Below, one piece after another: positions 5,346 to 60,377 of a stretch of 64,000 nt of DNA. The notes below the pieces were generated by a model. That model did not search any database, had not been told where the DNA came from, and saw nothing but the letters and a program-made list of their open reading frames with translations. The stretch's first letter is position 1. Each line of letters starts with the position of its first letter. This DNA comes from Macrostomum lignano (lineage: Eukaryota): the NCBI GenBank assembly GCA_002269645.1, contig NIVC01003725.1, forward strand, positions 1-64,000, written 5' to 3'. Made by a program: the position numbers and the translations under genes.

Positions 5346-5641
5346 GTACCGCGCCATCACTTCCGCCTACTACCGCGGCGCCGTGGGCGCCCTGCTGGTG
5401 TACGACATCGCCAAGCACGAGACATTCGAGAGCTGCGACCGCTGGCTGCGGGAGCTCCGCGACCACGCCGACCCCGCTACCGTGGTTGCCCTGGTTGGCA
5501 ACAAGTGCGACCTGCGCCACCTGCGCGCTGTCCCGGCCGACGAGGCGCAAGCCTTCGCCGAGCGGAACAACCTCAGCTTTATGGAGACCAGCGCCCTGGA
5601 TGCCACTAACGTTGAGGAGGCGTTTGTGCAGATTCTCACAG
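5346..5641 (+). CDS. Rab11: Rab11 exon 3 ([31 protein letters not shown])
   Basis: Continues ER|YR in phase. G4 and G5 motifs present. Donor ACAG|GTGAGA. Confidence 0.97.
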
Positions 5642-5796
5642 GTGAGACTGTTGGATGCTTGAGTCCTGCTGAGTCATTTGGAGTCCACTCGGCTGTAATT
5701 GGAATCCGGCGTGTTGCCATGGATATTCGCTGTCAATATCGGGATAAAATTTTTAATATTTTGATTATATACAGTAAATAGAACCTTTTCAGTAGT

Positions 5797-5960
5797 CATT
5801 AGCCATTAGAATCCTCCCCAAAGTCATTAGCATCCTCCATAAAGCCATTAGAATCCTCTCCAAAGTCATTAGCATCCTCCATAAAGCCATTAGAATCCTC
5901 CCCAAAGTCATTTGAATCTTCCCCAAAGTCATTAGAATCCTTTATAAAGTCATTAGAATC
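5797..5960. repeat. Degenerate 21-bp repeat (AAAGTCATTAGAATCCTCCCC), Rab11 intron 3
   Basis: About 7 copies visible. Confidence 0.85.
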
Positions 5961-5971
5961 CGCTGCCAGCA

Positions 5972-6456
5972 GATGACCCCAAACGACCCCTAAATGACCC
6001 CAGTTGACCCCAACTGACCACCAAATGACCCCAGTTGACCCCAAATGACCACCAAATGACCCCAGTTGACCCCAAATGACCACCAAATGACCCCAGTTGA
6101 CCCCAAATGACCACCAAATGACCCCAGTTGACCCCAACTGACCACAAAATGACCCAAGTTGACCCCAAATGACCACCAAATGACCCCAGTTGACCCCAAC
6201 TGACCACCAAATGACCCCAGTTGACCCCAAATGACCACCAAATGACCCCAGTTGACCCCAAATGACCACCAAATGACCCCAGTTGACCCCAACTGACCAC
6301 CAAATGACCCCAGTTGACCCCAAATAACCACAAAATGACCCAAGTTGACCCCAAATGACCACCAAATGACCCCAGTTGACCCCAACTGACCACCAAATGA
6401 CCCCAGTTGACCCCAAATGACCACAAAATGACCCCAGTTGACCCCAAATGACCCCA
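5972..6456. repeat. 31-bp minisatellite AAATGACCCCAGTTGACCCCAAATGACCACC abutting the Rab11 exon 4 acceptor
   Basis: Tandem periodicity. Ends within a few bp of the AG at 6461-6462. Confidence 0.95.
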
Positions 6457-6462
6457 AACCAG

Positions 6463-6605
6463 GCATCTACCGCATCGCGAGCGCCAGACAGCTCCGGGAT
6501 GACAACGCGGGCCACGGGGCCCTGCCGCAGCAGCGCTCCACCGTCAGCCTGGGCGCGGGCGCTGCCCAGCAATCGCAGAGCTCCAAGAAGTCTTGCTGCT
6601 CCTAG
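6463..6605 (+). CDS. Rab11: Rab11 exon 4 (IYRIASARQ...KKSCCS*); spliced CDS 654 nt = 217 aa
   Basis: Phase-1 acceptor AAACCAG|GC. Ends in a di-cysteine prenylation motif (CCS*). Exon lengths 40+175+296+143 sum to a multiple of 3. Confidence 0.9.
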
Positions 6606-7779
6606 AAGACGATGCCGTCTGTGCCAGATTATTTTCGCAAAGCTCGTGAAAATCTCTGACTTGGCTAGTTGAGTTGGACTTAACAATTTCTAGTACAATT
6701 TTGGTTGGAACAGACTGGAGGTAGAGCTTGGAGTGAGTATTCCATAGATTTCTGTATACTGGTTCAAACTGCTCTATATTACTTATATACTGCTTAAAAG
6801 ACAGTTTCAGTAGAGAGTTAGGCATTGTCAATAGTGCAATGTGTTTGCTATTCATTCTTGGAACTAATTATATTATTATTTAGCTCTGCTCTGCTCTGTC
6901 TCAAAGAATCCAATGAGAATTTACTCTTGAGTTTAACTCCTATTTTCTTACAATATGTTTTATTCTTAATTTTTTAATAGCAGACTTTCACTGCAGTCTT
7001 TTGTTGGTTTTAATCTCTGCTCTTCACTCCTACTAGTTACAGTAGTCAGATGCGGGTCCATTGTGCTAAAAACTCTGGCTCTTGGATTACTAGTTTTAAA
7101 TGCTTCACAGTGTCTGGCGTTGCCTTAGCTGCTTTTCTAGGCAATTTTTCCCATCGATTCTGAGTGCTAATTTGAGCACCAGTTTGAGCACCTGTTGTGA
7201 GCGCTCAATTGCACTTCTGCGGACATATTTATCTAAGAAATAATTGAGTCACACTACTTACATTAGTAATATAAATGGCTATGTTCGGCCATCTATTCAA
7301 GAAAGCTTCTTTTTTTCACTGATGCTTTATATTGCTTTAGCTGCGTTCCAATCATTCGGAAATATAATAAGCAAATGTATTTCATCATTTTTATGCAGTT
7401 GTCAAAGAGGGCATCCTAGACTGTGAATTTTATTTATTTTCTATGCTGTTGGCTGCGGTTAGTGCGCTGTTGAACTAGTTTGTCTCTCTGTGATAGGGTA
7501 GCGCCTCCCCCCTAACAGTACACAATCACAGCGGCTGTGCCGTTGGCTGCACACCTGCCCACTTAAGGTTTTTTTCTGTTTCTATATTAGATTGCACAAT
7601 AATTTAGGTTTAGGGTAGAAAATAAATTTAGGGAGTTGTAGAGATCATCTACTGATAAGTAGAAAGTATAGAATTGTAGCGCTAAAAGCTTGCACGGCGG
7701 GAAAAATTTTAATGGTCGAAATATAGCATTTTGGTCTACAGGGACAGAAACAGATCATGTTAGTACCAGTTGGATTTGG

Positions 7780-8490
7780 ATGTACTTTATACCACTTGAG
7801 AGTCCCTCCGAGCTGACTTCCCTTCTTGCACTTCAGAGTCGCAAGTCGCAGTCGCAGCAGCAGCCGGAGACACACGGCTGCGGCGGCGGCGGCGGGGGCG
7901 GTGGCGGCAGCCCCGACGACCTGCAGAAGCGTCGCGCCCACTCGCAGTCGGAGCAGCGCCGTCGCAACTCCATCAAGGCCGCCTACGCCGAATTGGCCGC
8001 CCTGACTGGCGGCAGCAGCGCCGAGGAGCCGGCCTTCGGCTCTGGAGAGGCGCCTTTGTCTCCGGCTGGGCGGGCGAGCCGGGCGGCCACCCTTCAGGCG
8101 GCCATCAGCCACTTTGAGGCGCTGATGCGCCAGCGCGATCAGCTCGATAGACAGCTGGCCGCCCTGCGCAAACAGACGGAAGCTGCGCGCCTCATCAATC
8201 GAGTTTATCAGCGCCGGGTCAGCCGAGACGGCGGCCAGTCAGCCGCCGGAGCGAGCGCGGACGCTGCCAAGCTGGCCGTCTTCCGGCACGTCGCGGACCA
8301 TCTGGCCGGCTCCTTTGCTAGCCGGCTGGGCGCCACCGCCGACTGCGGCAGCCTGCTGGACGGCGTCCTGGACTGGCTGGACGACTGCTGCTCGCCCGGC
8401 CAGCTGGCCGCCCTCGGCGAGGAGGCCGTGGCGCGGCACCTGGCAACCCCTCGGCCAGTGTCGAGTAGCAACGGAGAGGCCAGTCGCTAA
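7780..8490 (+). CDS. MLX: MLX (Max-like protein X / Bigmax) bHLH-Zip transcription factor; 5' end uncertain (ATG 7780, or splice acceptor at 7835-7836)
   Basis: Basic region RRAHSQSEQRRRNSIK with the H-E-R E-box contacts, helix 2 SRAATLQAAISH and a zipper. C-terminal KLAVFRHVADHLAGSF..VLDWLDDCCSPGQL resembles the MLX/Mondo DCD domain. Confidence 0.85.
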   Translation: MYFIPLESPSELTSLLALQSRKSQSQQQPETHGCGGGGGGGGGSPDDLQKRRAHSQSEQRRRNSIKAAYAELAALTGGSSAEEPAFGSGEAPLSPAGRASRAATLQAAISHFEALMRQRDQLDRQLAALRKQTEAARLINRVYQRRVSRDGGQSAAGASADAAKLAVFRHVADHLAGSFASRLGATADCGSLLDGVLDWLDDCCSPGQLAALGEEAVARHLATPRPVSSSNGEASR

Positions 8491-12517: not shown

Positions 12518-13147
12518 ACTCCACCAGCGTGCGCATGCCCTCCTTGTCTCCCACAATGTCCGAGGGCACCATTGTGAAGTGGCACAAAGCCGAGGGCGAT
12601 ACGGTGCAGCCCGGCGACATTCTGTGCGACATTCAAACCGACAAGGCGGTCGTGTCCTTCGAATTTGACGACGAAGGCGTCCTGGCCCGGGTGCTCCGCG
12701 CCGACGGCTCCGCCGGCTCAGTTGGCGACGTCATCGCCGTTATGGCCGACCCCGGCGAGGACTGGCAAGCCGTGGCTTCAGAGGCCGCCAAGCTGGCCAC
12801 TGCAGCCGATAAGCCGCCCTCTGCCGCTGCCCCGCCTTCACCTTCGCCTTCAACATCGTCGACGCCGCCACTATCGTCAACAGCCTCGCCGCCTCGCCGC
12901 ATCGGCCCGGCCGCCCAGCTGCTCATTCGGCTGCATCGCCTGACCCCTGCCGACCTGCGCGCCACCGGGCCGCACGGCACCCTGCTGAAGTCAGACGTTC
13001 TCGCCCAGGTCAAATCCGCTCCGCCTGCTGCCGTAGCTGCTGCCGCTTCCGCCCCGTCTGCAGGGGTTGCCGCTGTCCCCGCCACCCCTGCCGCTGTCCC
13101 CGCCGCCCCTGCCGCTGTCCCCGGCGCCCCGCCGCTGACTCCGCCAG
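12518..13147 (+). CDS. PDHX: PDHX / E3-binding protein, 5' coding segment (lipoyl domain plus E3-binding domain); 3' boundary unresolved; presequence exon not located
   Basis: MPSLSPTMSEGTIVKW..IQTDKA lipoyl motif, then GPAA..L..ATGPHGTLLKSDV subunit-binding motif. Acceptor CACAG| at 12516-12517. Confidence 0.88.
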
Positions 13148-13540
13148 CCGGCCGTCGATGCGGCCCCTAGAGCCGCGGACCCAGCCGGGCTACCTGGACC
13201 ATCCCGTGGCGCCCGGCCTGCGCGACTGGGCGGCCCTCCAGGCGGCCATCAAGTCGGCCGCGCCGCACGCCTACGCCACCGCCTCCTGCAGGCCGCGCCT
13301 GCCCGCCTCCGGCGCCCCCTCCTCGATTGTCGCCCTGGCTGTGCGCGCCCTGGCCAGCGCGCTGTCCGGCGGTGGCTCCGAGGCCGATCCGGTGAACATC
13401 GGCGCCCTGCTGCTGGCGGCGCCGGCTCTGCCCAGATTAGTCCGGCTGCCGCGCGCCCAAGCGATGGGCCTGCGCGAGATTGACAGGCGCCTGGCAGAGG
13501 CGGCGTCTGCCAACAGCGACTCCGGCCCGCTAGCGGCTGT
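13148..13540 (+). CDS. PDHX: PDHX inner-core domain, N-terminal part (different frame from the upstream segment); 5' boundary unresolved
   Basis: IKSAAPHAYATASC resembles the E3BP PHAYATA motif. Donor CTGT|GTGAGT, phase 2. Confidence 0.8.
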
Positions 13541-23391: not shown

Positions 23392-24788
23392 TCAGGGATC
23401 ACGAGCGGAACTGCGCAGGCTCCCTCCGCCCTGCCGCCGCCACCTCCGCCGCCTCCGCCGCCGCCGCAAGCGTCTCCTCTGCCCCCGAGCTCCGCCGCCT
23501 GCTCCGACTCCAGCGCCGCCGCCTCTTCCTCGGCGCTGCTCGTCCTGCCGATTGCCGGACCGCCTGAATACCCGGCAGCACATGCGCGAGGCCAGGGCGC
23601 TCAGGTGGCGCCGAAAGCTCTTGTTGAGGCACCAGTAGCAAATAGGCGACACCGCGCTGTGCAGGTGGCCGAGAAACAGCGCCACGCTGTAGATGCTCTC
23701 CTCCAGCGGTCGCATGACCTCCGGCCGCCCGGCCACCAGCTGCAGCCCGCCCCGGAACGGCGGCCTCGGATCGCGGCGCTGGTGACCGTCGCCAGCAGAG
23801 GAGAAGTCGATCCAGACTCCGACGAGATTCACCGGCAGCCAGCAGATAACGAAGCAGGCGACAAGGAGCACCAGCGTCTGCACGGCGCGCTTCGTGGACT
23901 GGTGCGCGACGCTGGCCTGGTACTGAGAGGGCACGCTGCTGTGAGACTCGCTCGCCTGGATCTGGTCCGTGTAGGAGGACACGCACGGGTTTAAGCGGTC
24001 GTGGCTGTGGAAGCGGCTGAGCCCGCCTACGTTGCCGCCGCCAGGGCCCTCCGCACCCACGGGGCTGCTGGGACCGACGGCGTCGCTTCCACCGCCACCG
24101 CCAGTTGTCGGGCTGACCGGAGCGCTGCTGGAGAACTGCAAAGATTGACGATGACGCTGGTGCTGATGCTGGCTCAGGTTGAGCATGAGACACCTGTTTG
24201 GATGAAGCAGATTCGGACTCGGCGGCGCCGGATGCTGGGGCGTCGGTGGACGCTGCTGATGCCGCTGCAGCCGCCACAGCTGAAGCTCCTCACCGTCAGG
24301 CTGCTGTTCCGACTGGCTGAGCAGGCGGGCCAGCGCCGCGATGCTAGCGGTGATGAAGCAGTAGCAAGCTGAGATGACGGCGCAGGGCATGCAGAATACC
24401 AGCAGCAGCAGCAGCACGGAGTACAGCCGCCTCGCCCACGGGTTTTCACCCCAGTACTCGTCGCAGAATGTGACACAGATTTCGCCGCACTGCTGGTCTT
24501 CGGGCGCGTCGCTGGGACTGCCAGTAGCGTTGAGAGCCTCACCGCCGCCGCCGCGGTTGCGGCCCTGCATGAACTCCTGCATGCTCTGCACGCCGAAGGT
24601 CACGGTAGACCGGATGAAGATGTTCGGCGAGGCGAGAGCGGCAGCGCCGCCCCACACCAGCAGAAGCAGCAAGACGAGTCGCCGGCCCTGCCAGAGCCGC
24701 TGCTTCACCGGCTCCTGACGGCGGAAACTCCTGGCGCGTAGAATCGCCATGGCAACCAGGGAGAACACGTTTGAGATGATGGCCACGC
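23392..24788 (-). CDS. Class A neuropeptide-receptor-like GPCR, exon 3 (end of TM3 to the C-tail)
   Basis: Phase-1 acceptor ATTCCAG|GC. ECL2 CDEYW, TM5 VFCMP, TM6 CFVICWLP, TM7 SAVSPICY, helix 8 NKSFR. Resembles orexin/allatotropin/CCK-type receptors. Confidence 0.9.
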
Positions 24789-24839
24789 CTGGAATCGGTT
24801 GGGCCGGCCTGGGGCGGTGAGCTGAGGTCAACTAGGGTA

Positions 24840-25602
24840 ACCCTCTCTGACAACTCCCTCTGACAGCTCCCTCTCTGACAAATCCCTCTGACAGCTCCCT
24901 CTCTGACAACTCCCTCTGACAGCTCCCTCTCTGACAAATCCCTCTGACAGCTCCCTCTCTGACAACTCCCTCTGACAGCTCCCTCTCTGACAAATCCCTC
25001 TGACAGCTCCCTCTCTGACAACTCCCTCTGACAGCTCCCTCTCTGACAAATCCCTCTGACAGCTCCCTCTCTGACAACTCCCTCTGACAGCTCCCTCTCT
25101 GACAAATCCCTCTCTGACAAATATCTCTGACAGCTCCCTCTCTGACAACTCCCTCTCTGACAACTCCCTCCTCTCTGACAAATCCCTCTGACAACTCCCT
25201 CTGACAGCTCCCTCCCTGACAAATCCCTCTGACAGCTCCCTCTCTGACAAATCCCTCTCTGACAACTCCCTCTGACAACTCCCTCTGACAGCTCCCTCCC
25301 TGACAAATCCCTCTGACAGCTCCCTCTCTGACAACTCCCTCTCTGACAGCTCCCTCTCTGACAGCTCCCTCTCTGACAACTCCCTCTCTGACAACTCCCT
25401 CTCTGACAACTCCCTCTCTGACAACTCCCTCTCTGACAACTCCCTCTGACAGCTCCCTCCCTGACAAATCCTTCTGACAACTCCCTCTCTGACAACCCTC
25501 TCTCTGACAAATCCCTCTGACAACTCCCTATCTAACAAGTCCCTCTCTGACAACCCTCTCTCTGACAACCCTCTCTCTGACAACTCCCTCTCTCTGACAA
25601 CC
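24840..25602. repeat. 15-17-bp minisatellite CTCTCTGACAACTCCCT in GPCR intron 2
   Basis: Tandem periodicity. Explains the ERELS/GSCQR ORFs. Confidence 0.95.
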
Positions 25603-26527: not shown

Positions 26528-28490
26528 CTTTAGATTCCTTTAGATTCCTTTAGATTCCTTTAGATTCCTTTAGATTCCTTCAGATTCCTTCAGATTCCTT
26601 CAGATTCCTTCAGATTCCTTTAGATTCCTTCAGATTCCTTTAGATTCCTTTAGATTCCTTTAGATTCCTTTAGATTCCTTTAGATTCCTTTAGATTCCTT
26701 TAGATTCCTTTAGATTCCTTTAGATTCTTTAGATTCCTTTAGATTCCTTTAGATTCCTTTAGATTGCTTTAGATTCCTTTAGATTCCTTTAGATTTCTTT
26801 AGATTCCTTTAGATTCCTTTAGATTCCTTTAGATTCCTTTAGATTCCTTTAGATTCCTTTAGATTCCTTTAGATTCCTTTAGATTCCTTTAGATTCCTTT
26901 AGATTCCTTTAGATTCCTTTAGATTCCTTTAGATTCCTTTAGATTCCTTCAGATTCCTTCAGACTCCTTCAGATTCCTTTAGATACCCATAGATTCCTTA
27001 GATTCCTTTCCATTCCTTTAGATTCCTTTAGATTCCTTTAGATTCCTTCAGATTCCTTCAGATTCCTTCAGATTCCTTCAGATTCCCTTAGATTCCTTTA
27101 GATTCCTTCAGATTCCTTCAGATTCCTTCAGATTCCTTTAGATTCCTTCAGATTCCTTCAGATTCCTTCAGATTCCTTCAGATTCCTTTAGATTCCTTTA
27201 GATTCCTTCAGATTCCCTTAGATTCCTTCAGATTCCTTCAGATTCCTTTAGATTCCTTTAGATTCCTTTCTATTCCTTTAGATTCCTTTAGATTCCTTTA
27301 GATTCCTTCAAATTCCTTCAGATTCCTTCAGATTCCTTCAGATTCCTTCAGATTCCTTCAGATTCCTTTAGATTCCTTCAGATTCCTTCAGATTCCTTCA
27401 GATTCCTTTAGATTCCTTCAGATTCCTTCAGATTCCTTCAGATTCCTTCAGATTCCTTTAGATTCCTTCAGATTCCTTCAGATTCCTTCAGATTCCTTTA
27501 GATTCCTTTAGATTCCTTCAGATTCCCTTAGATTCCTTCAGATTCCTTCAGATTCCTTTAGATTCCTTTAGATTCCTTTCTATTCCTTTAGATTACTTTA
27601 GATTCCTTTAGATTCCTTCAGATTCCTTCAGATTCCTTCAGATTCCTTTAGATTCCTTTAGATTCCTCCAGATTCCTTTCGATTCCTTCAGATTCCTTTA
27701 GATTCCTTCAGATTCCTTCAGATTCCTTCAGATTCCTTCAGATTCCTTCAGATTCCTTTAGATTCCTTTAGATTCCTTTAGATTCCTTCAGATTCCTTCA
27801 GATTCCTTTAGATTCCTTTAGATTCCTTCAGATTCCTTTAGATTCCTTTAGATTCCTTTAGATTCCTTCAGATTCCTTCAGATTCCTTCAGATTCCTTTA
27901 GATTCCTTTAGATTCCTTCAGATTCCCTTAGATTCCTTCAGATTCCTTCAGATTCCTTTAGATTCCTTTAGATTCCTTTCTATTCCTTTAGATTCCTTTA
28001 GATTCCTTTAGATTCCTTCAAATTCCTTCAGATTCCTTCAGATTCCTTCAGATTCCTTCAGATTCCTTCAGATTCCTTCAGATTCCTTTAGATTCCTTCA
28101 GATTCCTTCAGATTCCTTCAGATTCCTTTAGATTCCTTCAGATTCCTTCAGATTCCTTCAGATTCCTTCAGATTCCTTTAGATTCCTTCAGATTCCTTTA
28201 GATTCCTTTAGATTCTTTCAGATTCCTTCAGATTCCTTCAGATTCCTTTAGATTCCTTTAGATTCCTTTCTATTCCTTTAGATTCCTTGAGATTCCTTCA
28301 GATTCCTTCAGATTCCTTTAGATTCTTTCAGATTCCTTTAGATTCCTTCAGATTCCTTTAGATTCCTTCAGATTCCTTCAGATTCCTTCAGATTCCTTTA
28401 GATTCCTTCAGATTCCTTCAGATTCCTTTAGATTCCTTTAGATTCCTTTAGATTCCTTTAGATTCCTTTAGATTCCTTTAGATTCATTTA
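26528..28490. repeat. 10-bp satellite T(T/C)AGATTCCT (about 195 copies) in GPCR intron 2
   Basis: Tandem periodicity. Confidence 0.97.
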
Positions 28491-28624
28491 GAACTGCTGC
28501 TTGTTTTCTGGGCGCATTTTGGTCAAGGTGCATTGCAAACAAATGCAAATACTCGTACGAACTAGACTGCCATTTCACGTCTCTTCTGATCGCTCCTTCT
28601 TTGCCCGACAGCCTTCCTCCCCCT

Positions 28625-29305
28625 TCCTGCACTTCCCCAAACTTCCGGCCCCTTCCTCTCCATTCCCGCCCCTTCCTCTCCATTCCCGCCCCTTCCTCTC
28701 CATTCCCGCCCCTTCCTCTCCATTCCCGCCCCTTCCTCTCCATTCCCGCCCCTTCCTCTCCATTCCCGCCCCTTCCTCTCCATTCCCGCCCCTTCCTCTC
28801 CATTCCCGCCCCTTCCTCTCCATTCCCGCCCCTTCCTCTCCATTCCCGCCACTTCCCCAACCTTCCTGCCCCTTCCTCTCCCTACCTTGCTGCTTCCCCT
28901 ACTTTCCTGCCCTTCTTCTACCTTCCTGCCTTTTCCCCTACCTTCCTGCCCCTTCCCCTACCTTCCTGCTTCTTCCCCTACCTTCCTGCCCCTTCCCCTA
29001 CTTTCCTGCCTCTTCCCCTACCTTCCTGCCTCTTCCCCTACCATCCTGCCTCTTCCCCTACCATCCTGCCTCTTCTCCTACCATCCTGCCCCTTCCCCTA
29101 CCATCCTGCCTCTTCTCCTACCATCCTGCCTCTTCCCCTACCATCCTACCCCTTCCCCTACCATCCTGCCCCTTCCCCTACCATCCTGCCTCTTCCCCTA
29201 CCATCCTGCCTCTTCCCCTACCTTCCTGCCTCTTCCCCTACCTTCCTGCCTCTTCCCCTACCTTTCTGCCTCTTCCCCTACCTTCCTGCCTCTTCCCCTA
29301 CCTTC
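28625..29305. repeat. Two adjacent pyrimidine-rich 20-bp arrays (CATTCCCGCCCCTTCCTCTC, then CCTTCCTGCCTCTTCCCCTA)
   Basis: Tandem periodicity. Lies 150 bp from the GPCR exon 2 donor. Confidence 0.93.
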
Positions 29306-29457
29306 CTTCCCCTTTCCTCTCCCTGCCTCCTGCCTCTCCTCACCCCTCTTCTATTCCTATGCCTCCTTTTCCCTCGCTCCGTCTCCTTTCCTCTCGTCTA
29401 TCTCTCTTTCTACCGCAGCTCGGTGTTTCAACCTCCCGATTCCCCCACTTGCCTCAC

Positions 29458-29778
29458 CTTCAGTAAAGTGCATCAGCTTGCAGCCGACCTTGCCCAGAGG
29501 CCAGGTGTGGTAGACGAGGTAGCAGACGGCGGCCGGCATGCAGACCAGAGTGACCAGCAGGTTGGACGCCGCGAGGCTGACCATCAGCTTTGGCAGGCGC
29601 TGCCTCAGCTGCTTGTACCGCAGGCCCATAGCGATGAAGAGGCCGTTGGCGCCAAGCGACCACAGCATGGCTACTCCGTAGGCCGCGAACAGGATGTACT
29701 CTAGCGGGCCCAGCGGTCGCCGGTTCAGCAGGTCGATCACCTCCTGTGTATGCAGGAATTGCTTCTGTGCAGCAGAGG
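29458..29778 (-). CDS. GPCR exon 2 (TM1-TM3)
   Basis: TM1 SLGANGLFI, TM2 SLAASNLLV, ECL1 WPLG, TM3 CKLMH. Acceptor TTCTTGCAG|, donor GAAG|GTGAGG, both phase 1. Confidence 0.9.
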
Positions 29779-32612: not shown

Positions 32613-33540
32613 TTAGTCCAAAGGGAGCGCCCAAAATGGCCTTCTAGGATTTCTGGGTGACCCCCGGATACGAACCTGTACCCTTTCTGCAACTTTAAAA
32701 AAGAAACGTCGATCGCTTCCAGCTTCACCCTGCAGCAAAGTGAAGTATACAAGTCAAAGAGACGCGATGAAAGAAAGATAAGAAGGCTCACTCGAAAATC
32801 TTCATCTAATCGAATATATAAAGAGCCAAGTATAGAAATATGACAACCGTCAAGGTCAGAGGCTGGGGAGAGGAGCAACAAAGCTGCTGCTACGGCTGCT
32901 GGTCTCCTGGGAAAAGACGGACCCTGCGGAAGAGCCCATTCGCATTTAGAGCCGGGGCTGAGCCATCCCATGAAAGCCTGCATGCTGTGAGGCAGAGGCA
33001 AAACACAGACAACAAAACAAGGTGCTTCTCCTTGCTCAGCCTCTGATACTCTACTTGTCCTCCATCTCTCGCTCTGCTTTTCCCCACCAACCCGTCCGCC
33101 CCCCCCCCCCCCCCCCGAACTCCCCAGCGGGAAAGACGCATCCCCCACACTCCTCTCCTCAGCTCAGGCACGCACAGAGATGATACACAAAGCAGGCAGG
33201 GGGGGGGCTTGCATGGGGAAACAGCTTACAAGCACAAAAGGCAGTTTTATATGGCATTAGCGCAGAGGCTTCCATGCTCTCTGTATACTCTCTACCAGAG
33301 GCTGGCTTTTCTTGTGAAGCTGCGTCTCCCGTGTCTCCAAGCCATTCAAGTCACGATACTGGGCATGCAGTCAATATTTTCAACCTGATCTCAATTGTCT
33401 CGAAGCTGAGGCTACGAAGCTGAGATCTGCTTACGCGTCTTTGAGTCTCCAACTTTGAATATGAGCTGGAATCAATTCATTGCATACATGGTATTGTCCA
33501 TGCTATTGATGGCAGTAAATATGCTCAGACGGACACTAAG

Positions 33541-34668
<1,128 letters not shown>

Positions 34669-35110
34669 ACTGGTTTCAATTATAAGATGTGCCTGGTGTG
34701 AAAGCTGAAAGCTGAGTTGTCAGGGAAATTGATGCAGCAATTTATTAGTAAATTATTCCTGAGTGCCGGATTTCCTGTTCTCTATTTCTCTATTCTTTGC
34801 CAGCTCTCTGCTTCCCCTTCACACCCACTTTAACCATGGCTGGCTTGCCTGCTGCTGCGCTTTCAAAGATGGACTTTGAGCCCCCACTCAGTGTGGCCGG
34901 CCGCTTCCCACTCCTCACTCCCTGCTCCGGCGCGGCCGCCCACTCGGCTGTCATTCGCTGGCTCAGCGTCCGCGTCCCCACCTGTAAGTCAGAATTTGAA
35001 ATTGCAGTGAGCAAACAACTGCCTAGCGGTCCGCAGGCCATCCTCACAAGATTGAGTCAACTCCGATGGGACAGGCTCCAGAGCACTAGCGACAGAGTCC
35101 GCTGACGGGG

Positions 35111-35153
35111 ATGCCGAGCATCTGGCTACCCATCGGCTGCCTGGCTCTGCTTG
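35111..35153 (+). CDS. FNDC4/5-like gene, exon 1 (signal peptide MPSIWLPIGCLALL)
   Basis: Hydrophobic N-terminus. Strong donor TTG|GTGAGT, phase 1, joins 36433 in frame. Confidence 0.7.
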
Positions 35154-35269
35154 GTGAGTTGCTTGTTATGCATACCAACCAAAATTCAGTGATAAATGAC
35201 GCATTTTCTGAGCGTAAAAAAGGTGATAGAAGACCTGCGATGAGACAGCCATAAAGACAAAAACAAAGA

Positions 35270-35450
35270 CACGTATACACACAGGCACACAGACACACAG
35301 GCACACAGACACACAGGCACACAGACACACAGGCACACAGACACACAGGCACAAAATTGCACAGGCACAAAATTGCACAGGCACACAGACACAAACACAC
35401 AGTCACACAAACACACAAACACAGACACACAGACACAGACACACAAGCAC
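35270..35450. repeat. GGCACACAGACACACA / CA-rich repeat in intron 1
   Basis: Tandem periodicity. Confidence 0.9.
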
Positions 35451-36432
35451 AGCCACACTGTCAGAAGCTCCATCGCGGTGCCCCAGCATGGCAGCTGATG
35501 AAGCCGTGAACTAAGGTGAAGGGAAGGCAAATCCGCCTCAGGGCAAGCCAGCACGGGATTCAGGCGGAACTGAATTGTGAGAAGCCGCCGAAACGCACAA
35601 AACACTGCTTGAGTAGCGAGATTTGTCTTTGTGCATCATCTGCATCCGCAGGCATTCAGCATCCGCAATCTCCAATCCCTCATCTCAGTTCTGCCTCTCG
35701 TTGCTTCCCAAATCCCGCACTACTCAGCGCACTCAGCTCCCGGTTCGGGCTGCAATCAATAGAAGCAGTTTGCTCGCGCCCCGCAATTCAGAGGGGGGGG
35801 GGAGTACTCAGGCACTCAGCTCACAGTCAGATTGATTCCCGGTTGCCGTCATATTACGGGAGGAGAGACTGCGACAAGTTCATGAGCGAGTTTATGAGTG
35901 AGCATATGAGTGAAGTCATAATTTGATGTCTGAGTCTTTGAGTGAACTGATGAATGAGAATATTGATTTTTGGCATGCTCGCAGAAGTCCTTGCAAATTT
36001 CAAGTATTTCTAGCATTTCTTTTTCCGTATAGTTTACTAACAGTAGACAATAGTGTTTGCGCGAATCAGTCAGGCTGATGTGTACTGATCCTGATATCTC
36101 ACAGCAATGTACGCCTGGGTCTGCTTCCTTTTGCTTTCAGCTCGCGATGCTTTTCTGACTTGTACCTGAAAAAAATCAAACTAATTATTTTATCCACAAG
36201 TAATGAAATGTAAAGCATTAGTGAAGTTTACAAAGGAACTCAAATGTAGTTATCAATTTCTTTACTTTAGCATTTTCAGCTCTAAATTATTCTATTTAAA
36301 TCTGCTTCTCAGATTCTCAGCTTCATCAGCTGAACTAGTCAGAGAGCCAGTCAACGCCTGACCAATGAGACTCACACAGAGCTTTTCTGCAGCTTCCCCC
36401 ATCCCCTCCGTTATCTTCATCACCCCTGGCAG

Positions 36433-36885
36433 CTGTGCCGCTAGCAGCTGCAGACACGGCAGCGGAGGCCAAGCCTGAGCCACTGTTCGCTGTCCCGTCC
36501 CAGACTTGCCAGCACCGGCTAAAGCTTCGAGTCCGGGCCGCGCCAGCCCCGGGATCCGCCGCGCTACTCCAGTGGGAGCCGCTGCCTCCGCCAGCGCGGC
36601 GCTTCTGCCGCGAGCTCGAGCTGCGACTGTTCGACTCAACTGGGCCGCCGGCTGGCCACCTAAGCTTCCGCGGCGTCTGGCATCTCAGCTGCTCGGCCAA
36701 CGGGCACCGCGTGGACGACCTCCGACCGGAAGCGGTCTACCGGGCCTCCGTCTCTGTGCTCCAGGAGCCGTCGGGCCTCTTCTGCCGCTGGCCGGAGTCG
36801 CTGGTCTTCAGCGTCTGGAATCTCAGCGCCGCTGTCGCTGCCGAGGACATGGCGGCCAAGGCAAACCTGACCGGTGTGAACTCCA
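36433..36885 (+). CDS. FNDC4/5-like gene, exon 2 (fibronectin type III domain)
   Basis: LLQWEP and VDDLRPEAVYRASV follow the FN3 W..P and L.P...Y pattern. Acceptor CCTGGCAG|, donor TCCA|GTGAGC, phase 1. Confidence 0.8.
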
Positions 36886-36916
36886 GTGAGCACAAATGCA
36901 CTTTTGGGGGCTGGCG

Positions 36917-37507
36917 ATAGACAGATGGCAGTGGAGACAGATGGCAGTGGAGACAGATGGCTTTTGGAGACAGATGGCAGTGGAGACAGATGGCAATGGA
37001 GACAGATGGCAGTGGAGACAGATGGCAGTGGAGACAGATGGCTTTTGGAGAAAGATGGCAGTGGAGACAGATGGCAGTGGAGACAGATGGCAATGGAGAC
37101 AGATGGCAGCTGAGACAGATGGCAGTGGAGACAGATGGCAGTGGAGACAGATGGCAGTGGAGACAGATGGCAGTGGAGACAGATGGCAGCTGAGACAGAT
37201 GGCAGTGGAGACAGATGGCAGTGGAGACAGATGGCAGTGGAGACAGATGGCAATGGAGACAGATGGCAGTGGTGACAGATGGCAGTGGAGACAGATGGCA
37301 ATGGAGACAGATGGCAGTGGTGACAGATGGCAGTGGAGACAGATGGCAGTGGAGACAGATGGCAGCTGAGACAGATGGCAGTGGAGACAGATGGCAGTGG
37401 AGACAGATGGCAGTGGAGACAGATGGCAATGGAGACAGATGGCAGTGGAGACAGATGGCAGTGGAGACAGATGGCAATGGAGACAGATGGCAGTGGTGAC
37501 AGATGGC
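36917..37507. repeat. 16-bp minisatellite GAGACAGATGGCAGTG in intron 2
   Basis: Tandem periodicity. Explains the CHLSPLPSV ORFs. Confidence 0.95.
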
Positions 37508-38039
37508 ACCGGCAATAGCGAGGCAAAAAGCAACAATTTTGGCCCAAGAAGCAATGGAGGTGGCCCAGCCACTGAAGGCGGAGCCTGATGTTCCGTGTGC
37601 TTGAATAAAAAAATTTGCGTATAAAAAAATGCAGAGAAGAAGGCGGAAATCGATCCTTTGAGTTGCATGCCGACTGTCGACCGACATCTGTTGGGCTTCA
37701 TCGGCTTCCCACTGCGGAGGCTGGGGAGGGGGAGGCGACAGGCCTCATCCGAGCTGCTCGATGGCAGTTATCAAAATAGGAATTGAGACGCTGGGATGAG
37801 GCCGGGGAGACTGGGATCTGGGCTCGCATGCATAGTCAACCAGCTCATATTGCTACTCAGCTTTTTGACTGGATTAAAGTAGAAAACATCAGTTAATTTC
37901 CTCTGCCGGCAAGAGCCCGCGCGTGTAAATCCGGTTCGCATGGCGTTCAGCCCCAACCTCCCAGCCGGCCCGGGCTGCCTGGAGGCATAGAGAGAAAAAT
38001 AATGAGATGGGAAACCGGCCAGACACCGGACAGGCTCGG

Positions 38040-38105
38040 ACAGGCCTATAAATGGCCGGCCCAATGGGCGTGGCTGAAGCTTTTGGGCGTGGCCGGATTG
38101 TGGCT
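38040..38105. promoter_or_regulatory. Cluster of TATAAA, CCAAT and two GGGCGTGGC (Sp/KLF-like) boxes
   Basis: CCTATAAATGGCCGGCCCAATGGGCGTGGC...TTTTGGGCGTGGCC. Motif match only. Confidence 0.35.
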
Positions 38106-38713
38106 GCCAGCCTGGAAAAAAATTAATCCCAGGAAGAAAGGAGAGTAGCTTTATGATTGTCCATTACGAGCTGAGATCAGGTGGTTCGGTAAGCGAGGGA
38201 AGCTAAATCCGTGCTCAGAAGCTGCAGCAGCTGAATTGCGCAATCATTAGCAGTACACCAAGGGGGCGGAATGGAATAGGGTGTCCATAGTCACCTGGTG
38301 CCATCTGTTGAAGGTCCAGAAGCTCCACCTGGCTGAAGGCCGGTGACCAACGAAGTCAGATCTGATGCCGACACGTGGTCAACGTGCTGATGAAATTTGG
38401 AGCACAAGGGTGTAATGAATACACTAGCAGCGCTTATGGCAGAATCGTTGAATATCTCGACGGTTCGGAGAGCTGGCGGCTTGATTCTTGTTTGAGAAGT
38501 TGCGCAACGGAAATTTAGCTTATGTTCGGGAATTTCGTGTGCCTGCGTTGCTCAATAACTGATCCCCGTTTTACCCACTCACCCATCATTCAAAGCAGAC
38601 TACTGTTAGTAGCTTTAAAGTTTTTTAATAGAATTTTCGCAAAATAATAAAAACTGAAGTTTCAACATAGGGCGTATTTAAACATGCATAAATAATCATA
38701 TTTACAACCACAG

Positions 38714-39822
38714 CCCCGACCGCCGCTCCGGCCAAGTACTCGCCGCCCCGCTGGACGGTGTCCGACGCGCTCATCTTCCTGCTGGTGCTGGGCGCCTGGG
38801 CCGCCGCGGTGGCCGTCTTCCTGCACAAGCTGGGCAGCCTGCGCCTGTCGCGCGGCAGCCGATCCGACAGAGCCCGGCACCTGCGTCCGAAGAATCTGGA
38901 CAAAGTGCAGGTGTGCGCTGAGTCCAGCGGCACTGTGATCTACAGGGAGTACGCGCGAGGCTCTCGGATGTCCATCTGCCTGGAGGAGCGCCAAGCACGA
39001 CTCGCCTGCCTGCAGCGCCGCTTCGCCGAGGAGCGCGCCCTCGAGGCCATCGACGAGCAGGCGAGCGCGGTGGCAACGACGACGGGAGTTGAAGAATCCG
39101 AAGAGCCGCCCAATGGCGACCGGTGCGGGCTGCGGCCGCTGCACTGGCTCCGCTGGCACCCGCAGCAGCAGCAGCAGACTCTGGACGCCATCAGCCTGCG
39201 CCGTCTGCCAACCTACGCAGTGACTTCTGCTGGTGGAGTCAACCTGCAGGTGCTGCCGTCTGCCGCAGCCAGCCAGCACCTGCTGCATCCGGCCTCCGCT
39301 GCCGCCACCGCGTTCAACCCGACAACTGTCGGCGTCAACGGGAAGGATGCTACTGCCGTCACTGCCGCCACAGCTGCCACCGTCAGCGTCATCTCGTCTG
39401 GTCGGCTGGCGTCCTCGACAAAGGAGCCAAATAAATATGCTAAGAGGCAGCGGGCGGAGCAGCAGGCAGAGCAGCAGACGGAGCAGCAAGCGGAGCAGCA
39501 GGTGGAGCAGCAGGCGGAGCAGCAGGCGGAGCAGCAGGCGGAGCAGCAGGCGGAGCAGCAGGCGGAGCGGCAGGAGGAGCAGCAGGCGGAGCAGCAGACG
39601 GAGCAGCAGGCGGAGCAGCAGGCGGAGCGGCAGGAGGAGCAGCAGGCGGAGCGGCAGGAAGAGCACAGATCAAAAGCGCCGCTAATCCGGCAGTTCAGCG
39701 AGTCGGCTGTGAGCAACGGTGCCGGGAGCGACTTGGCGGCCGATCGGCCGACCCGACTGGCGAGTCTGGGCAGCTCCATCAAGTCCGAGCCGGAACGGGC
39801 CGTCAACTCTACGGACGTTTGA
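38714..39822 (+). CDS. FNDC4/5-like gene, exon 3 (TM helix plus cytoplasmic tail with in-frame AEQQ repeat); spliced CDS 1605 nt = 534 aa
   Basis: Acceptor CCACAG| phase 1. TM ALIFLLVLGAWAAAVAVF, then HKLGSLR. GC-rich ORF open to TGA. Confidence 0.85.
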
Positions 39823-40244
39823 CTTGCACGATTCTTTGCACTCGCGCGGAAATTGTACAATGAGTGGACATGCAACTCACCTCTCTGTTGTATCGATTCG
39901 ATATTTTTATTGTCCTCTTTAACTACTATTGCGAATCGACAGTTAAAAAGTCACGTGACTCAATGTGTTGTTGCTCTGAAAAATATTCGTTCCATCTACT
40001 GCGCTATTTAATAAACATTCTAAAGCTACAGATACTACTAAAATAAGTAGTAAATGCCACTCGACTTCAGGGGTTCAACAAAAGTTCAGGGGCCTGATTG
40101 AGCAGCTTCTAATGCTGATGAATTTGCTCAGTGCATAAAATTATTTCGCTGCTACAATTAAGCGATTTGCTCGTGTTCTCGAGTTTTTTAATTACGAGTC
40201 GTACATATGTCGAATTATTGGTGATAAAGAGTAAAGCTTCGCCA

Positions 40245-47383: not shown

Positions 47384-47479
47384 GTAGGGGCCTGTCCGTG
47401 GCAATGGGCTCTGTTGCTTGATATAGATTTTTGGCTGCAAAACTTTTTGGAGCGCCCCTTCTTTCCCACCGGTCTTCTT

Positions 47480-48090
47480 TCACATCCTCTTCATTCACAC
47501 CCGATTCTTTCACACCCTATTCATTCACACCCTACTCATTCACACCCTATTCATTCACACCCTATTCATTCACACCCTATTCATTCACACCCTATTCATT
47601 CACACCCTATTCATTCACACCCTATTCTTTCACACCCTCTTCTTTCACACCCTACTCATTCACACTCTATTCATTCACACCCTACTCATTCACACCCGAT
47701 TATTTCACACCCTATTCATTCACACCCTATTCATTCACACCCTATTCATTCACACCCTATTCATTCACACCCTATTCATTCACACCCTATTCATTCACAC
47801 CCTATTCTTTCACACCCTCTTCTTTCACACCCTACTCATTCACACTCTATTCATTCACACCCTACTCATTCACACCCGATTATTTCACACCCTATTCATT
47901 CACACCCTATTCATTCACACCCTATTCATTCACACCCTATTCATTCACACCCTATTCATTCACACCCTATTCATTCACACCCTATTCATTCACACCCTAT
48001 TCATTCACACCCTATTCATTCACACCCTATTCATTCACACCCTATTCATTCACACTCTGTTCATTCACACCCTATTCATTCACACCCTCT
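47480..48090. repeat. 15-bp minisatellite TCATTCACACCCTAT
   Basis: Tandem periodicity. Explains the SFTPY/HSHPI ORFs. Confidence 0.95.
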
Positions 48091-48594
48091 CTTTCACATC
48101 CTTTTCTTTTCTACTCTCTTTCTCCGCTCGTGTTTATTGCTTTCTTCTATTGATTTCTTTCGAAACTGCATTTCCTTCTTTCACCTCGTCCCTCTAGATT
48201 GGCTCATGACTTCTTTCTCGATTGCTTCAGAGTTTTGGCATCTCAAGATCGTGATTTAATTCGGAATATCCAACAGCAATAAACTATTCGTCTAGAATCT
48301 GTAGCTTTACAAAGTGGAGCAGAGTTTTCGTTAATAAAAAGAACCCATTTCGGCGTCAAAGCGCCTACATCAGGTTGTTGGTTAGGCTTGAAGAACTGGG
48401 GTTGGGGCATCTTCCGCAGACCCACAGGCGGAAATTCAAACGGGTCAGAAAATGCGCGATTGTGAAGATCGGACTGAGAGCCTCACGCGCCCGGAGTTTT
48501 GAATGAGCGATTCAATAAAATTTTTTCCCATCGCACCGGTTGAGTATAGTTCTTGTATTGCTATTAATGCGTTTGTGCTTTGTATTATTCTCTA

Positions 48595-54661: not shown

Positions 54662-55068
54662 TCAATAAACATAGAACGCCACCTCAGCCACTGTGATGGT
54701 TGGGTAATTGGTTCTGTGAATAATTTTCAACCCCTTGACCGAGTCGTATTTGCATTTGTCATTAACAGCATAGTACCCGAGTTTGCCTACATTATAGTTT
54801 CTATCAAAGAAGCACAACGTTTCATGCTTACGGATGACAGCTATTTGCAAAACTCTGCTGCTCTTTAAGCAGCAGCCGTACTTGCCCCAGACAGCGAAGC
54901 CCCTCAAGTTCACTGGAGCATCGAATTTGTAGTGAAAATACGTCTCATGCACTGGAGTCGAAGGCTTGGAGAACTTCTTGTGCAGCGCCTGTCCGTAGGA
55001 GTACACGTCATTGTCGATTGTGCGCTCGCAGTCCGGCCAGCTCACCAGGCAGGAGACTTTCAGCTTTC
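54662..55068 (-). CDS. Exon 2 of the Cys-rich protein: probable galactose-binding/discoidin-like domain; spliced CDS 1347 nt = 448 aa
   Basis: Acceptor AATTTCAG|GA, phase 1. FHYKFDAPVNLRGFAVW and C-terminal ITVAEVAFY resemble jelly-roll lectin/F5-8 strands. Confidence 0.65.
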
Positions 55069-55280
55069 CTGAAATTCTGGTTTTGGTGTCGAGTGAGGTT
55101 CTAGAGAGGCTTAAAATGTTATTTCGACCTTCCGTTATGTTCAGTCTAGGCTTACCAAATTGAAGGAAAATAAAATGAAAGAAATTAAACAATCTCGATA
55201 GTTTAGCGGTAACTAGTGCTAAAAATTTTCGAGGTTTTATGAGCTTGAGGTAAGAAATAAGGGAACTGCCGGGAGCTCAC

Positions 55281-56220
55281 TGTAGCAGCGGTTGTCCCGA
55301 AGGGCGGCGCCGCCGTTGGGGCACAGGTCGCATTTAGTCATGCCGGACTTGATGGCCAGGGCGAAGTCCCGGTCGCACTTTTGGCACTCAGCCGCGCCCG
55401 CCGCGTCAGAGAAGGTGCCCGGAGGGCAGGCCTTGCACTGCTTGCTGCCTTCTGAGGAGGCGAACTGGCCGGCCGGGCAGAGGGTGCAAGCCGAGGCACC
55501 CATAGCTGAGAAGCTGCCGGCCGGACAGCGGGTGCAAGCGGAGGCGCCCATAGCAGAGAAGCTGCCGGCAGGGCAGCGGGTGCAAATCGAGGCGCCCCTA
55601 GCTGAGAACTTGCCGGCCGGGCAGCGGTGGCAAGCCGAGGCGCCCGCAACTGAGAAGCTGCCGGCCGGACAGCGGTGGCAAGCGGAGGCGCCCGCAGTTG
55701 AGATCCTGCCGGCTGGGCACGGCTTGCAGGCGGCCGCTCCAGGTGGGGAGAAGTGGCCCGGCTGGCACTTGCTGCACTCCTCTGCTCCGGCCTTGCTCGA
55801 GGTGCCGGCGGGACACTTCACGCAGGCTGGGGAGCCGCTAAAACGGACGAAGCTGCCGGCAGGGCAGGGCGTGCAGCTCGACAAGCCGTCCGTGGCAGCA
55901 ATGGAGCCCTTGGCGCACTTCTGGCAGCTCGCGGAGCCCGAGCTGGCGGCGAAGCTCCCCGGCCAGCACTTGGAGCAGGCGGCGGCGCCGGCGCGGCTGT
56001 ATGAGCCTGGCGGGCACTTCTGGCACTTGGAATTCACGGCTATTTCCCTATGGGTGCCGGCGCTGCAGGGCTCGCACATGCGGTCCGAGTCTTCGCTTAG
56101 CTGGTGGCCTGGCAGGCACATTTTGTGGTCTTGCCGCTTGCCTCTCTGCAGGTTCCGGTCAGCCGACGACCCGGTCAGGGCGGCCAGCAGAGCCGCAGCC
56201 ACTAGCAGAGAAAAATTCAT
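55281..56220 (-). CDS. Secreted Cys-rich repeat protein, exon 1 (signal peptide plus about 16 CxxCPxGxF modules, ephrin-receptor-like/GCC2_GCC3 type)
   Basis: MNFSLLVAAALLAALTGSSA signal peptide. 16-18-aa CxxC repeats. Donor TACA|GTGAGC, phase 1. Confidence 0.85.
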
Positions 56221-57945: not shown

Positions 57946-58282
57946 CTCGCTCACTCTATGCCTCGACTGTCTGTACTTACTGCAATTTTTGAGCATCATC
58001 GCATTCCGCTACTTCATGGCACAACCAGAAACTCTGACTTTTGTACTCGTTAAAAACCATCTGAATTCCAGTTAATCTTTTTTCAAGTAGATCCAAAATA
58101 TTGTCTGGTTGGCAACTGAAAACTGCCACTCGAGCCGCTACTCGAATAATCATTTTATCCCAGAAACTGGACAGCGCTGCCAGATGGAGATGCGGAAGTG
58201 ATCCGTTTCCAACTTCCTACGTTTGAGTAAAGTCTCCGACTGCCTCTTCTCAGCAGCTGTTGCACATTTACTAACATTGTTA

Positions 58283-58579
<297 letters not shown>

Positions 58580-60377
58580 ATTTGTCTGTCTTTTTCTTTC
58601 GCGCTCCTCTCATATCCCATGACCTTGAGCTTGATCGCCAGTTTCTATTCTTTCACGTCCCGTACATTAATTCCGAGCCGACCTCCCGGCGCATCATCGC
58701 AGTTATTCAGTTATCTGCAGTGCAATGCATGAAGCTGCACCGGGGGGGGGGGGGCAGCCCAGAGCGCCATGCCTGGTGCTCGAGTCGCAGAGAAAGTGAG
58801 CTGCAGAGTGGAGCTTGCAGCCTCCCTCATCAGTCGGGAGTATCGACTTACCGGATAATCCCCTCAGCTCGCCAGACTGCAAGCTGAAAGCAGCTGCGCC
58901 CCATCCAGCCTCTCATCCTTCATCAGCTCTCTGCGAGTCCCTGGCGAATGTTCTTTTCACGCCTGCACAGCGGGTCGCAAAAATGAGTTCAATTCGTGAG
59001 GATTCTCCAGTCTACCTCCTCCCGTCTCGCGCAGCTCCAGTTTTTGCATTTTCGTATTCGAATTCGCCGGCCAACCCAACAGCCGGCGGGCCCAGCCTCC
59101 CGTGCGTCATCAGCCAGATATATTTCTGGCCGGCACCCGGGCCCAATTTTCCTTGATTAATTTTGTGCTGAATTTTTCATGCCGGCAAAAATGCTGCCAG
59201 TCGTGGGAACCCGCGGGCGGAGGCTGGGGAAGAAGGAAGGCGAGCTCAGGCCTCTCCCGTGCTGAGAAATTTTCGGCTTTCAACAGGCACCCGGGATGAG
59301 GAGGAAAACAGTGGAGGAAAAACTGCCCCCCTGGGTGCCACAAGGCGATTCCTTCGGCTGCCGAGAGGGGTCAGCCGGAGGTCAGTTGGTGGTCGGGATC
59401 AAAATTAAAACCGTTGCTCAAGAATTACTTCGGCTGCTTGAAGAATCCCAAAATGAATGCTGGTTTTAAATCCGGTCTAGCCCGAGCTTTGATCCCCCGG
59501 CAAGAACTGGTGACTCATCACTGATTTATGCTCCGCTTTCAAATTCTCCAGACTCTGCAGCCGCCGCCGGTCACTGTAGATCCGGGCGACCTTCGCTGCG
59601 TGACCAGGTGAGCGAAACTGCAACTATAGGGTGGGGGGGTCTGCGGCTTCCAGCTGCTCGGCGTGTCCTGCAGCCACCGCAGCTGCCGGGTCTGCGCCCG
59701 ACTATCTGGGCCGGAATCTCCGCTGCCCGACCCGCCTGACCCCCAGCCGCATTGCCATGGCAGCCAACTGAAATGCTGGAATTCCCGCAGAGCGGCCGGT
59801 CAGCCATTCGGGCTGGTGCTGAGCTGTCTTCTATTTTATTTTTTCCCATACAGAAATATTTCACTTGATTTACAGCCAGCAATCTGTGGCTCGAGCTTCT
59901 CACTATGGAGAGCCACAGAGCAACCCGCGCCTCATCAGCTGGCTTCTCCGGAATAACTGCTCACTCTCTCCTTATCATCTAGGAGAAGAAGAAGAGACCT
60001 TGCGGTTTGCACAGAAAACTGGCAGGCAGGGGGGGGGGGAGATGCCGGTTGGGAAATTCTGCCAGGGAGACGAAATCTGCCGCCCAGCTGCCAGAGTGGG
60101 GGGGCGGACACACCAAGTGAATTGGGAGTGCCGCCACCCACCACCGCTGCTTTGCATATTTATCCCAACGACAGTAGCGGTCCAAATTAAGCCCAGCCTC
60201 CCAGCTTAGAGAGGCCCCACTTCCCTCATCTTCTGGGTCCTCTTCGACGAATAATATGTGCCGATTTCTTCACTCTGTCAGTGTCGCGGGAGCAGGACTT
60301 GTTGGCAAAGTGCACTAAAGTACCTATGAGGCAATCTGATGCATGAGTATAATGTCTGTAATAAATTTTAAGATTAT

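Follow-up and report, generated by a model that had tools for sequence, protein, structure and literature searches.

The stretch analysed here comprises positions 1 to 64,000 of contig NIVC01003725.1 and is referred to as the window (64 kb). Between positions 35111 and 39822 of its plus strand it probably carries a three-exon gene of macrostomid flatworm type, whose product would be a glycoprotein of the DUF4808 family (PF16066) that crosses the membrane once, with type I topology. The same Pfam family also covers the membrane anchor of FNDC4 and FNDC5. The protein is a new, divergent flatworm member of a known and uncharacterised family. At the level of sequence comparison its membership is solid through the transmembrane (TM) helix and the conserved cytoplasmic box directly after it, given the results of a profile search and of hhalign alignments covering these two parts. 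An initial annotation of the same DNA had read the locus as a homologue of the precursor of irisin, FNDC5, a reading that is retained here in part.

The region from 34900 to 40100 of the window was inspected for the gene model. The exons, introns and protein segments assigned are the following, with amino acid (aa) numbers referring to the spliced product and lengths in nucleotides (nt):

35111..35153, plus strand: predicted exon 1, 43 nt, coding for the first 14 1/3 codons, start codon included (MPSIWLPIGCLALL), forming the first half of the predicted signal peptide.
35154..36432, plus strand: intron 1, 1279 nt, GT..AG, with a (ACACACAGGCACACAG)n microsatellite at 35277-35451.
36433..36885, plus strand: exon 2, 453 nt, phase 1-1, coding for aa 15-166, which take in the last residues of the predicted signal peptide, the complete ectodomain module and some of the stalk.
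36501..36824, plus strand: putative fibronectin type III (FN3)-like beta-sandwich, aa 38-145, assigned from hallmark residues, an AlphaFold model of moderate confidence and Foldseek.
36886..38713, plus strand: intron 2, 1828 nt, GT..AG, with a 16-nt minisatellite at 36919-37508.
38714..39822, plus strand: exon 3, coding for aa 166-534, that is stalk, TM helix, cytoplasmic tail and stop codon.
38767..38823, plus strand: TM helix, aa 184-202 (ALIFLLVLGAWAAAVAVFL), containing W194-x6-F201, assigned from hydropathy, the invariant columns of the family alignment, a sub-threshold DUF4808 match and the alignment with the FNDC5 TM segment.
38824..39021, plus strand: cytoplasmic juxtamembrane box, aa 203-268, HKLGSLRL..RHLRPKNLDKVQVC..SGTVIYREYARGSRMSICLEERQARL, assigned from the profile search and hhalign.
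39447..39658, plus strand: 12-nt in-frame tandem repeat, 17.7 copies, coding for the (A/T/V)EQQ low-complexity stretch of the tail.
39682..39765, plus strand: C-terminal motif, aa 489-516, LIRQFSESAVS...RLAS, in common with the Macrostomum lignano protein A0A1I8JKZ5.

Direct splicing of the three exons gives 1605 nt, corresponding to 534 codons and a TGA stop, with both introns starting in GTGAG and ending in AG and both junctions in phase 1. The initial annotation, which had proposed three phase-1 exons encoding 534 aa with none of the exons appearing whole in the open reading frame (ORF) track, is borne out by the sequence on both counts; no exon is a complete ORF in the mechanical ORF list. 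Its signal peptide, single TM helix and long tail were also found: aa 1-20 are hydrophobic (Kyte-Doolittle about 1.9), as expected of a putative signal peptide, hydropathy reaches 2.7 in the one TM helix at aa 184-202, and a tail of 332 aa follows. A stalk of about 35 residues lies between the ectodomain module and the membrane, and N-glycosylation sequons are located at N144, N159 and N164. In the tail, the (A/T/V)EQQ repeat is not present in A0A1I8JKZ5, and BLASTP between the two C-terminal tails gave no match. The C-terminal motif common to both proteins reached a Smith-Waterman score of 44 (shuffles 26.1 +/- 4.8, with 3 of 1000 reaching 44), which supports coding up to the proposed stop. 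Intron 2 deserves separate mention, as its minisatellite (unit AGACAGATGGCAGTGG, 36.8 copies, 92% matches) occupies one third of the intron and generates long spurious ORFs on both strands.

The closest homologue is A0A1I8JKZ5 itself (P0001, 263 aa), with 55% identity over aa 177-342 (BLASTP, E 1e-52). It was the only protein retrieved by a word-index homologue search with aa 1-315; the word-index search with the full 534 aa returned no homologue, its candidate list being swamped by matches to the low-complexity tail. With Macrostomum lignano as the source of the one close match, the flatworm origin presumed in the initial annotation is supported. A two-sequence profile made from the start of exon 3 (38716-39240) and A0A1I8JKZ5 was searched with HMMER against 1.84 billion representatives and identified 55 proteins at E<=1e-3, four of them at E<=1e-10. 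Every one of these matches the TM helix together with roughly 60 residues beyond it (profile positions about 17-100), and their common sequence reads ..IL.AW..AIALFLHKWGKIRI.QP.EPRYKH.PKNLDTIKVVKR.TDSVIYKSY....S.TM.AREKRL.RMNTMPNIK. Only two columns of the 56-sequence alignment are invariant, the Trp and Phe of the TM helix (W-x6-F; W194 and F201 in the window protein), while R, P, N, I and R are nearly invariant in the box, for which the family consensus is PKNLD..V..DSVIYxxY..REKRL. All 56 aligned sequences match DUF4808 at E<=0.01 (best 8.2e-18), and six also match fn3. The remaining Pfam matches of the gene model are low-complexity noise only (TFIIA and similar).

The named members are all spiralian (annelids, molluscs, brachiopods and nemerteans) and almost all are labelled uncharacterised; no vertebrate protein is present among the named hits of the 55 obtained with this profile. 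They include:

ELT89998, Capitella teleta.
CAH1774778, Owenia fusiformis.
XP_013385249, Lingula anatina.
XP_022342893, Crassostrea virginica.
XP_074655229, Tubulanus polymorphus.
XP_064642794, Lineus longissimus.
XP_060578501, Ruditapes philippinarum.

Full-length members are arranged as signal peptide, one FN3 domain, stalk, TM helix with W-x6-F, and box. When the window model was aligned by hhalign with nine long members, aa 177-267 matched at 98.3% (E 1.6e-14), and when it was compared with the family minus the two Macrostomum-type rows the match was 99.6% (E 2e-23). The initial annotation had foreseen that the best hits might fall in another family of FN3 and TM proteins with no similarity across the TM and juxtamembrane region; it is exactly across these two parts that the homologues match.

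Most of the family entries (P0002-P0055) are 120-200 aa long and begin shortly ahead of the TM helix. Since they stem from ORF calling on short contigs (Logan or ENA), they are taken as last-exon fragments. The contig of the flatworm-like hit P0002 (L001, positions 405-992), for example, has 1749 bp and is too short to hold the ectodomain exon. In many animals a single final exon appears to carry the TM helix, box and tail, preceded by an intron that ends shortly before the TM helix, as in the window. A subgroup composed of P0036, P0010, P0016, P0026, P0046 and P0049 has the motif VVARHRDSVIYKNYSENMSRT..RQKRLDRMNTMPNIKLGE in common and might represent an arthropod (CG12541-like) branch. A literature search returned only one paper mentioning DUF4808.

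The annotation of A0A1I8JKZ5 requires correction. Its UniRef name, "C-X-C motif chemokine 2", was rejected, as no chemokine family is found by Pfam at E<=10 and the protein contains the TM helix and the family box. It starts at the equivalent of exon 3 (aa 176 of the window protein), so the existing annotation of this relative is truncated; in contrast to the window protein, it possesses neither signal peptide, nor ectodomain, nor AEQQ repeat. What the two proteins do share is the TM and cytoplasmic region, the LHKLG variant and the C-terminal RQxSESAxS motif. Judged by these sequence features, A0A1I8JKZ5 is an N-terminally truncated and misnamed gene model for the TM and cytoplasmic part of a DUF4808-family protein. 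A sequence identity of 55% makes it a paralogue of the window gene or an orthologue in another species. A paralogue elsewhere in the window was ruled out, since tblastn matched the three exons only.

The nature of the ectodomain was addressed by structure prediction and by alignment with the family. Modelled by AlphaFold from the single sequence, it has a predicted local distance difference test (pLDDT) score of 49.7 and shows six strands at the FN3 A, B, C, C', F and G positions followed by a C-terminal helix. With a nine-row family alignment, which itself includes FN3 proteins, the model rises to a pLDDT of 63.3 and a predicted template modelling (pTM) score of 0.54, with seven strands, and the top 50 PDB matches found for it by Foldseek are all FN3 domains (E about 1e-4, target TM-score up to 0.76). 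The hallmark residues of the fold are in register in hhalign and in an independent MAFFT alignment: W62, in strand B, falls on the B-strand Trp of the family, and L111-R-P-E-A-V-Y117, leading into strand F, falls on the family L-x-P-x-T-x-Y. The module also occupies one symmetrical phase 1-1 exon of about 150 codons, the form in which FN3 and Ig extracellular modules are usually encoded. On these models, exon 2 most likely codes for a strongly diverged FN3-type sandwich.

The relationship with FNDC5 was examined with the human sequence, which matches fn3 with 50.7 bits and DUF4808 with 30.2 bits (cutoff 27), the latter over residues 150-192, where its TM helix and the start of its cytoplasmic part are located. 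The positions of the DUF4808 profile matched by FNDC5 are also those matched by the window protein, FNDC5 scoring above the threshold and the window protein below it. Against the full-length spiralian profile, FNDC5 aligned at 98.2% (E 3.8e-14) over residues 23-184, collinearly from the end of the signal peptide through FN3 and stalk to the TM helix; the alignment stops at residue 184, and the conserved cytoplasmic box has no counterpart in FNDC5. In a database of about 90 sequences, BLASTP gave 27% identity over 161 aa, from FN3 through TM, between FNDC5 and the Owenia protein P0079. Because TM matches can be purely compositional, a shuffle and control test was run: the FNDC5 TM segment scores 54.9 against the family profile, compared with 22.2 +/- 3.9 (maximum 35) for 100 region-preserving shuffles and 17-25 for five unrelated TM segments (GYPA, EGFR, EPOR, CD4 and ITGB3). 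The likeness to the FNDC5 TM segment proposed initially, including its Trp and Phe, is therefore real, family-specific and dependent on residue order. Direct similarity between the window protein and FNDC5 amounts to 8 of 27 residues, in the TM segment only, and BLASTP against human FNDC5 gave nothing outside it.

Several results weigh against this interpretation of the gene. No Pfam fn3 or other FN3-type family was detected in the model, even at E<=10, and the ectodomain aligns with the FN3 profile of the family at an hhalign E of only 0.11-0.19, a score that 5 of 100 shuffles reach. Foldseek gave no significant match with the single-sequence model, and the FN3 fold of the alignment-based model is partly circular because of the FN3 proteins in its alignment, with a pLDDT of only 63. 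Irisin (4LSD), with which the initial annotation had suggested comparing the modelled ectodomain, is not among the top 50 Foldseek matches. At the family level, the window protein scores 14.2-17.7 bits against DUF4808 (aa 183-218), below the Pfam gathering threshold of 27 bits, and at the position four residues beyond the TM Phe, where the family has a nearly invariant Trp, both Macrostomum-type proteins have a Leu. The gathering threshold is operational and not biological; A0A1I8JKZ5 (19.3 bits) and several accepted-looking members, the Lingula protein (23.7 bits) for example, also fall below it. In the FNDC5 comparison, only the FN3 part of the human sequence used was verified (against PDB 4LSD, 205.8 bits). 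In the gene model, exon 1 has only 43 nt and both splice junctions are predictions from the sequence; finally, any role of the cytoplasmic box is one that we purely infer.

The results on the ectodomain favour, in part, a different view, that of a DUF4808-box membrane protein without an FN3 ectodomain. The FN3 domain would have been replaced or lost among flatworms, and the ectodomain would consist of a beta-rich module that contains Cys and is specific to the lineage. Besides the silence of Pfam and the non-significant hhalign score, this view is consistent with the four Cys of the ectodomain (40, 73, 101 and 132), unusual for FN3, and with the outcome of the homologue search among 5.8 billion proteins, where exon 2 alone gave 282 candidates, none at E<=10; a PDB sequence search with aa 1-281 also gave no match at E<=10. 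There are parallels in other proteins as well, since the 112-aa N-terminal region of P0036 has no fn3 match and Drosophila CG12541 is reported to be annotated as containing an FNDC5-like domain yet to lack an FN3-like fold in AlphaFold (PMC10523451). However, the hallmark residues are in register with the family, the strands of the single-sequence model were placed at FN3 positions independently of the family alignment, the alignment-based model matches FN3 domains only, and the symmetrical exon fits an FN3 or Ig module. Loss or replacement of the FN3 domain is considered unlikely, and the FN3 domain of the initial annotation is kept as a probable reading on the hallmark residues and the moderate AlphaFold model, although it could be backed neither by a Pfam match nor by more than a marginal hhalign score.

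A further possibility is that the 5' end is wrong and only exon 3 is a genuine coding exon of this gene. Exons 1 and 2 would then be open by chance in GC-rich DNA or form part of some other transcript, and the true ectodomain would be different or very short. Long ORFs are frequent in this GC-rich region, in several frames and on both strands, and independent support for the model was therefore sought; in addition, the only annotated homologue, A0A1I8JKZ5, has no ectodomain, and the small size of exon 1 and the predicted status of the junctions point the same way. Against this, when the six frames of exon 2 were scored by codon-usage log-odds with a table derived from verified coding pieces of the window, the proposed one came out best, and its GC content by codon position (0.73/0.55/0.79) resembles that of the verified window exons (0.70/0.54/0.83). 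The donors are strong, the junction phases agree, and at the AG acceptors the composition changes sharply from AT to GC. The 4.4 kb preceding exon 2 contain 39 ATG..GT candidates in phase 1, among which exon 1, whose donor reads TTG followed at the splice point by GTGAGT, ranked first both by donor consensus and by N-terminal hydrophobicity; together with the start of exon 2 it encodes what looks like a typical signal peptide. Exon 3, which is backed by its homology to A0A1I8JKZ5, has no in-frame ATG ahead of the TM helix, and on the 5' side of the acceptor its frame stays open for only 8 codons, which makes an upstream exon necessary. The short start of A0A1I8JKZ5 and of many family entries, in turn, looks like the product of last-exon ORF calls. 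A misassigned 5' end accordingly seems very improbable, and the three-exon gene model is plausible and, on these sequence features, partly validated.

It is equally improbable that the gene is a functional orthologue of the irisin precursor, with an ectodomain released from the cell as a signal, the mode of action that has been proposed for FNDC5 and Iditarod. By analogy, such a function could be accommodated by the common overall architecture, by the family-specific TM helix in common with FNDC5 and by the stalk, which could hold a cleavage site, and Iditarod indicates that FNDC5-like proteins function in an invertebrate. Nevertheless, the ectodomain is the least conserved part of the protein and shows no significant similarity to irisin by BLASTP, by PDB search or among the top Foldseek matches, no cleavage motif is recognisable in the protein, and the strongest constraint falls on a cytoplasmic box that FNDC4 and FNDC5 lack. 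The label "FNDC5-like" is right, as far as sequence goes, at the level of Pfam family and architecture, whereas "irisin-precursor homologue" overstates the evidence.

Under the preferred interpretation, a DUF4808-family membrane glycoprotein with an FN3-type ectodomain, the N-terminal 20 or so residues would be cleaved as a signal peptide, routing the protein into the secretory pathway, and exon 2 would contribute one strongly diverged FN3-type sandwich, which a glycosylated stalk would present on the outside of the cell. The TM helix would carry an interfacial or intramembrane Trp, with the conserved box directly after it possibly binding a cytoplasmic partner or acting in sorting through PKNLD and (S/T)VIYxxY. 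The long Q/A/E-rich tail may serve as a linker that evolves fast, with a second, Ser-rich motif conserved within the lineage at its end. Conservation decreases from the box and TM helix to the C-terminal motif and then to the ectodomain. Since conservation is much stronger in the box and TM helix than in the ectodomain, what selection maintains in the family is probably a function in the membrane and cytoplasm, and probably not that of releasing a conserved irisin-like hormone.

A broader scenario, put forward only tentatively and rather doubtful at present, is that FNDC4 and FNDC5 are the vertebrate remnant of an old bilaterian receptor-like family with an FN3 domain, a W-x6-F TM helix and a PKNLD/VIYxxY box, whose ancestral function would have been at the membrane and in the cytoplasm; vertebrates would have lost the box, and the flatworm ectodomain would have drifted. 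If this were true, the gene would offer a handle on the pre-irisin function of FNDC5-type proteins in a regenerating flatworm model that is amenable to RNA interference (RNAi). Whether FNDC5 is mainly a hormone precursor or a membrane receptor is still debated, and Drosophila Iditarod is so far the sole invertebrate relative studied. The occurrence of a member of the same TM-defined family in a flatworm, and of protostome members with a strongly conserved and unstudied cytoplasmic box, is of interest in this context, even if it holds no surprise for the field, the family being already in Pfam. In practical terms, the current flatworm annotation has the gene truncated and misnamed, and the analysis corrects the gene model and supplies a candidate that could be studied in Macrostomum by RNAi or in situ methods.

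Other features were recognised in the window apart from this gene:

5383-5781, plus strand: exon of a Ras-family small GTPase (PF00071, 93 bits), Rab11-like by eye.
7690-8490, plus strand: helix-loop-helix exon (PF00010, 31 bits), with a basic region RRAHSQSEQRRRNSIK that by eye resembles the Mlx/Max-type basic helix-loop-helix zipper (bHLH-Zip).
12529-13170, plus strand: exon with lipoyl and E3-binding domains, of the pyruvate-dehydrogenase-complex E2 or E3-binding protein type.
23392-24831, minus strand: 479-aa ORF with a match to the rhodopsin-family seven-transmembrane profile (PF00001, 65.6 bits) and a long third loop; ORFs in other frames overlap it in this GC-rich DNA.
55237-56220, minus strand: ORF of 327 aa, signal-like at its N-terminus, in which seven Cys-rich repeats of the Ephrin_rec_like type were recognised (PF07699, 132.9 bits).

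The ORF at 54662-55192 (minus strand), which adjoins the last of these, has no Pfam match and may be a further exon. Micro- and minisatellites are unusually abundant in the window (for instance at 4622-5131, 5799-6686, 24539-25583, 28468-29704 and 47414-48259), and the long (GACA/GACAGACA)-type microsatellite arrays at 33400-34700 and 58150-58900 read as TDRQ or CLSV "ORFs" on both strands.

Among known systems, the Drosophila relatives could be compared by published description only. Iditarod (Idit) is described as the Drosophila homologue of FNDC5, with similarity concentrated in the FN3 and TM domains (PMC10523451), and beside Idit and CG12541 the window protein shows a conserved TM region and an uncertain FN3 domain. 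For flatworms, the literature search turned up no publication about FNDC5-like genes. FNDC4 and FNDC5 have one TM helix and, as is probable for the window protein, a single FN3-type ectodomain, belong to the same Pfam TM and juxtamembrane family, and share with it W-x6-F and the aromatic and basic pattern that follows. The principal difference lies in the cytoplasm, where the FNDC5 tail is short (about 40 aa) and lacks the PKNLD/VIYxxY box, whereas the window protein has a far longer tail that contains it. The spiralian proteins, by contrast, contain both the W-x6-F TM helix and a homologous box (R..PKNLD.V.V....VIY..Y......R..RL), and their parts follow the same order of signal peptide, one ectodomain module, stalk, TM helix, box and variable tail. 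The window protein departs from them in its ectodomain, which has diverged beyond sequence recognition and contains four Cys, in the Leu that replaces the post-TM Trp, in its much longer tail with the Q/A/E repeat, and in a Pfam score under the gathering threshold.

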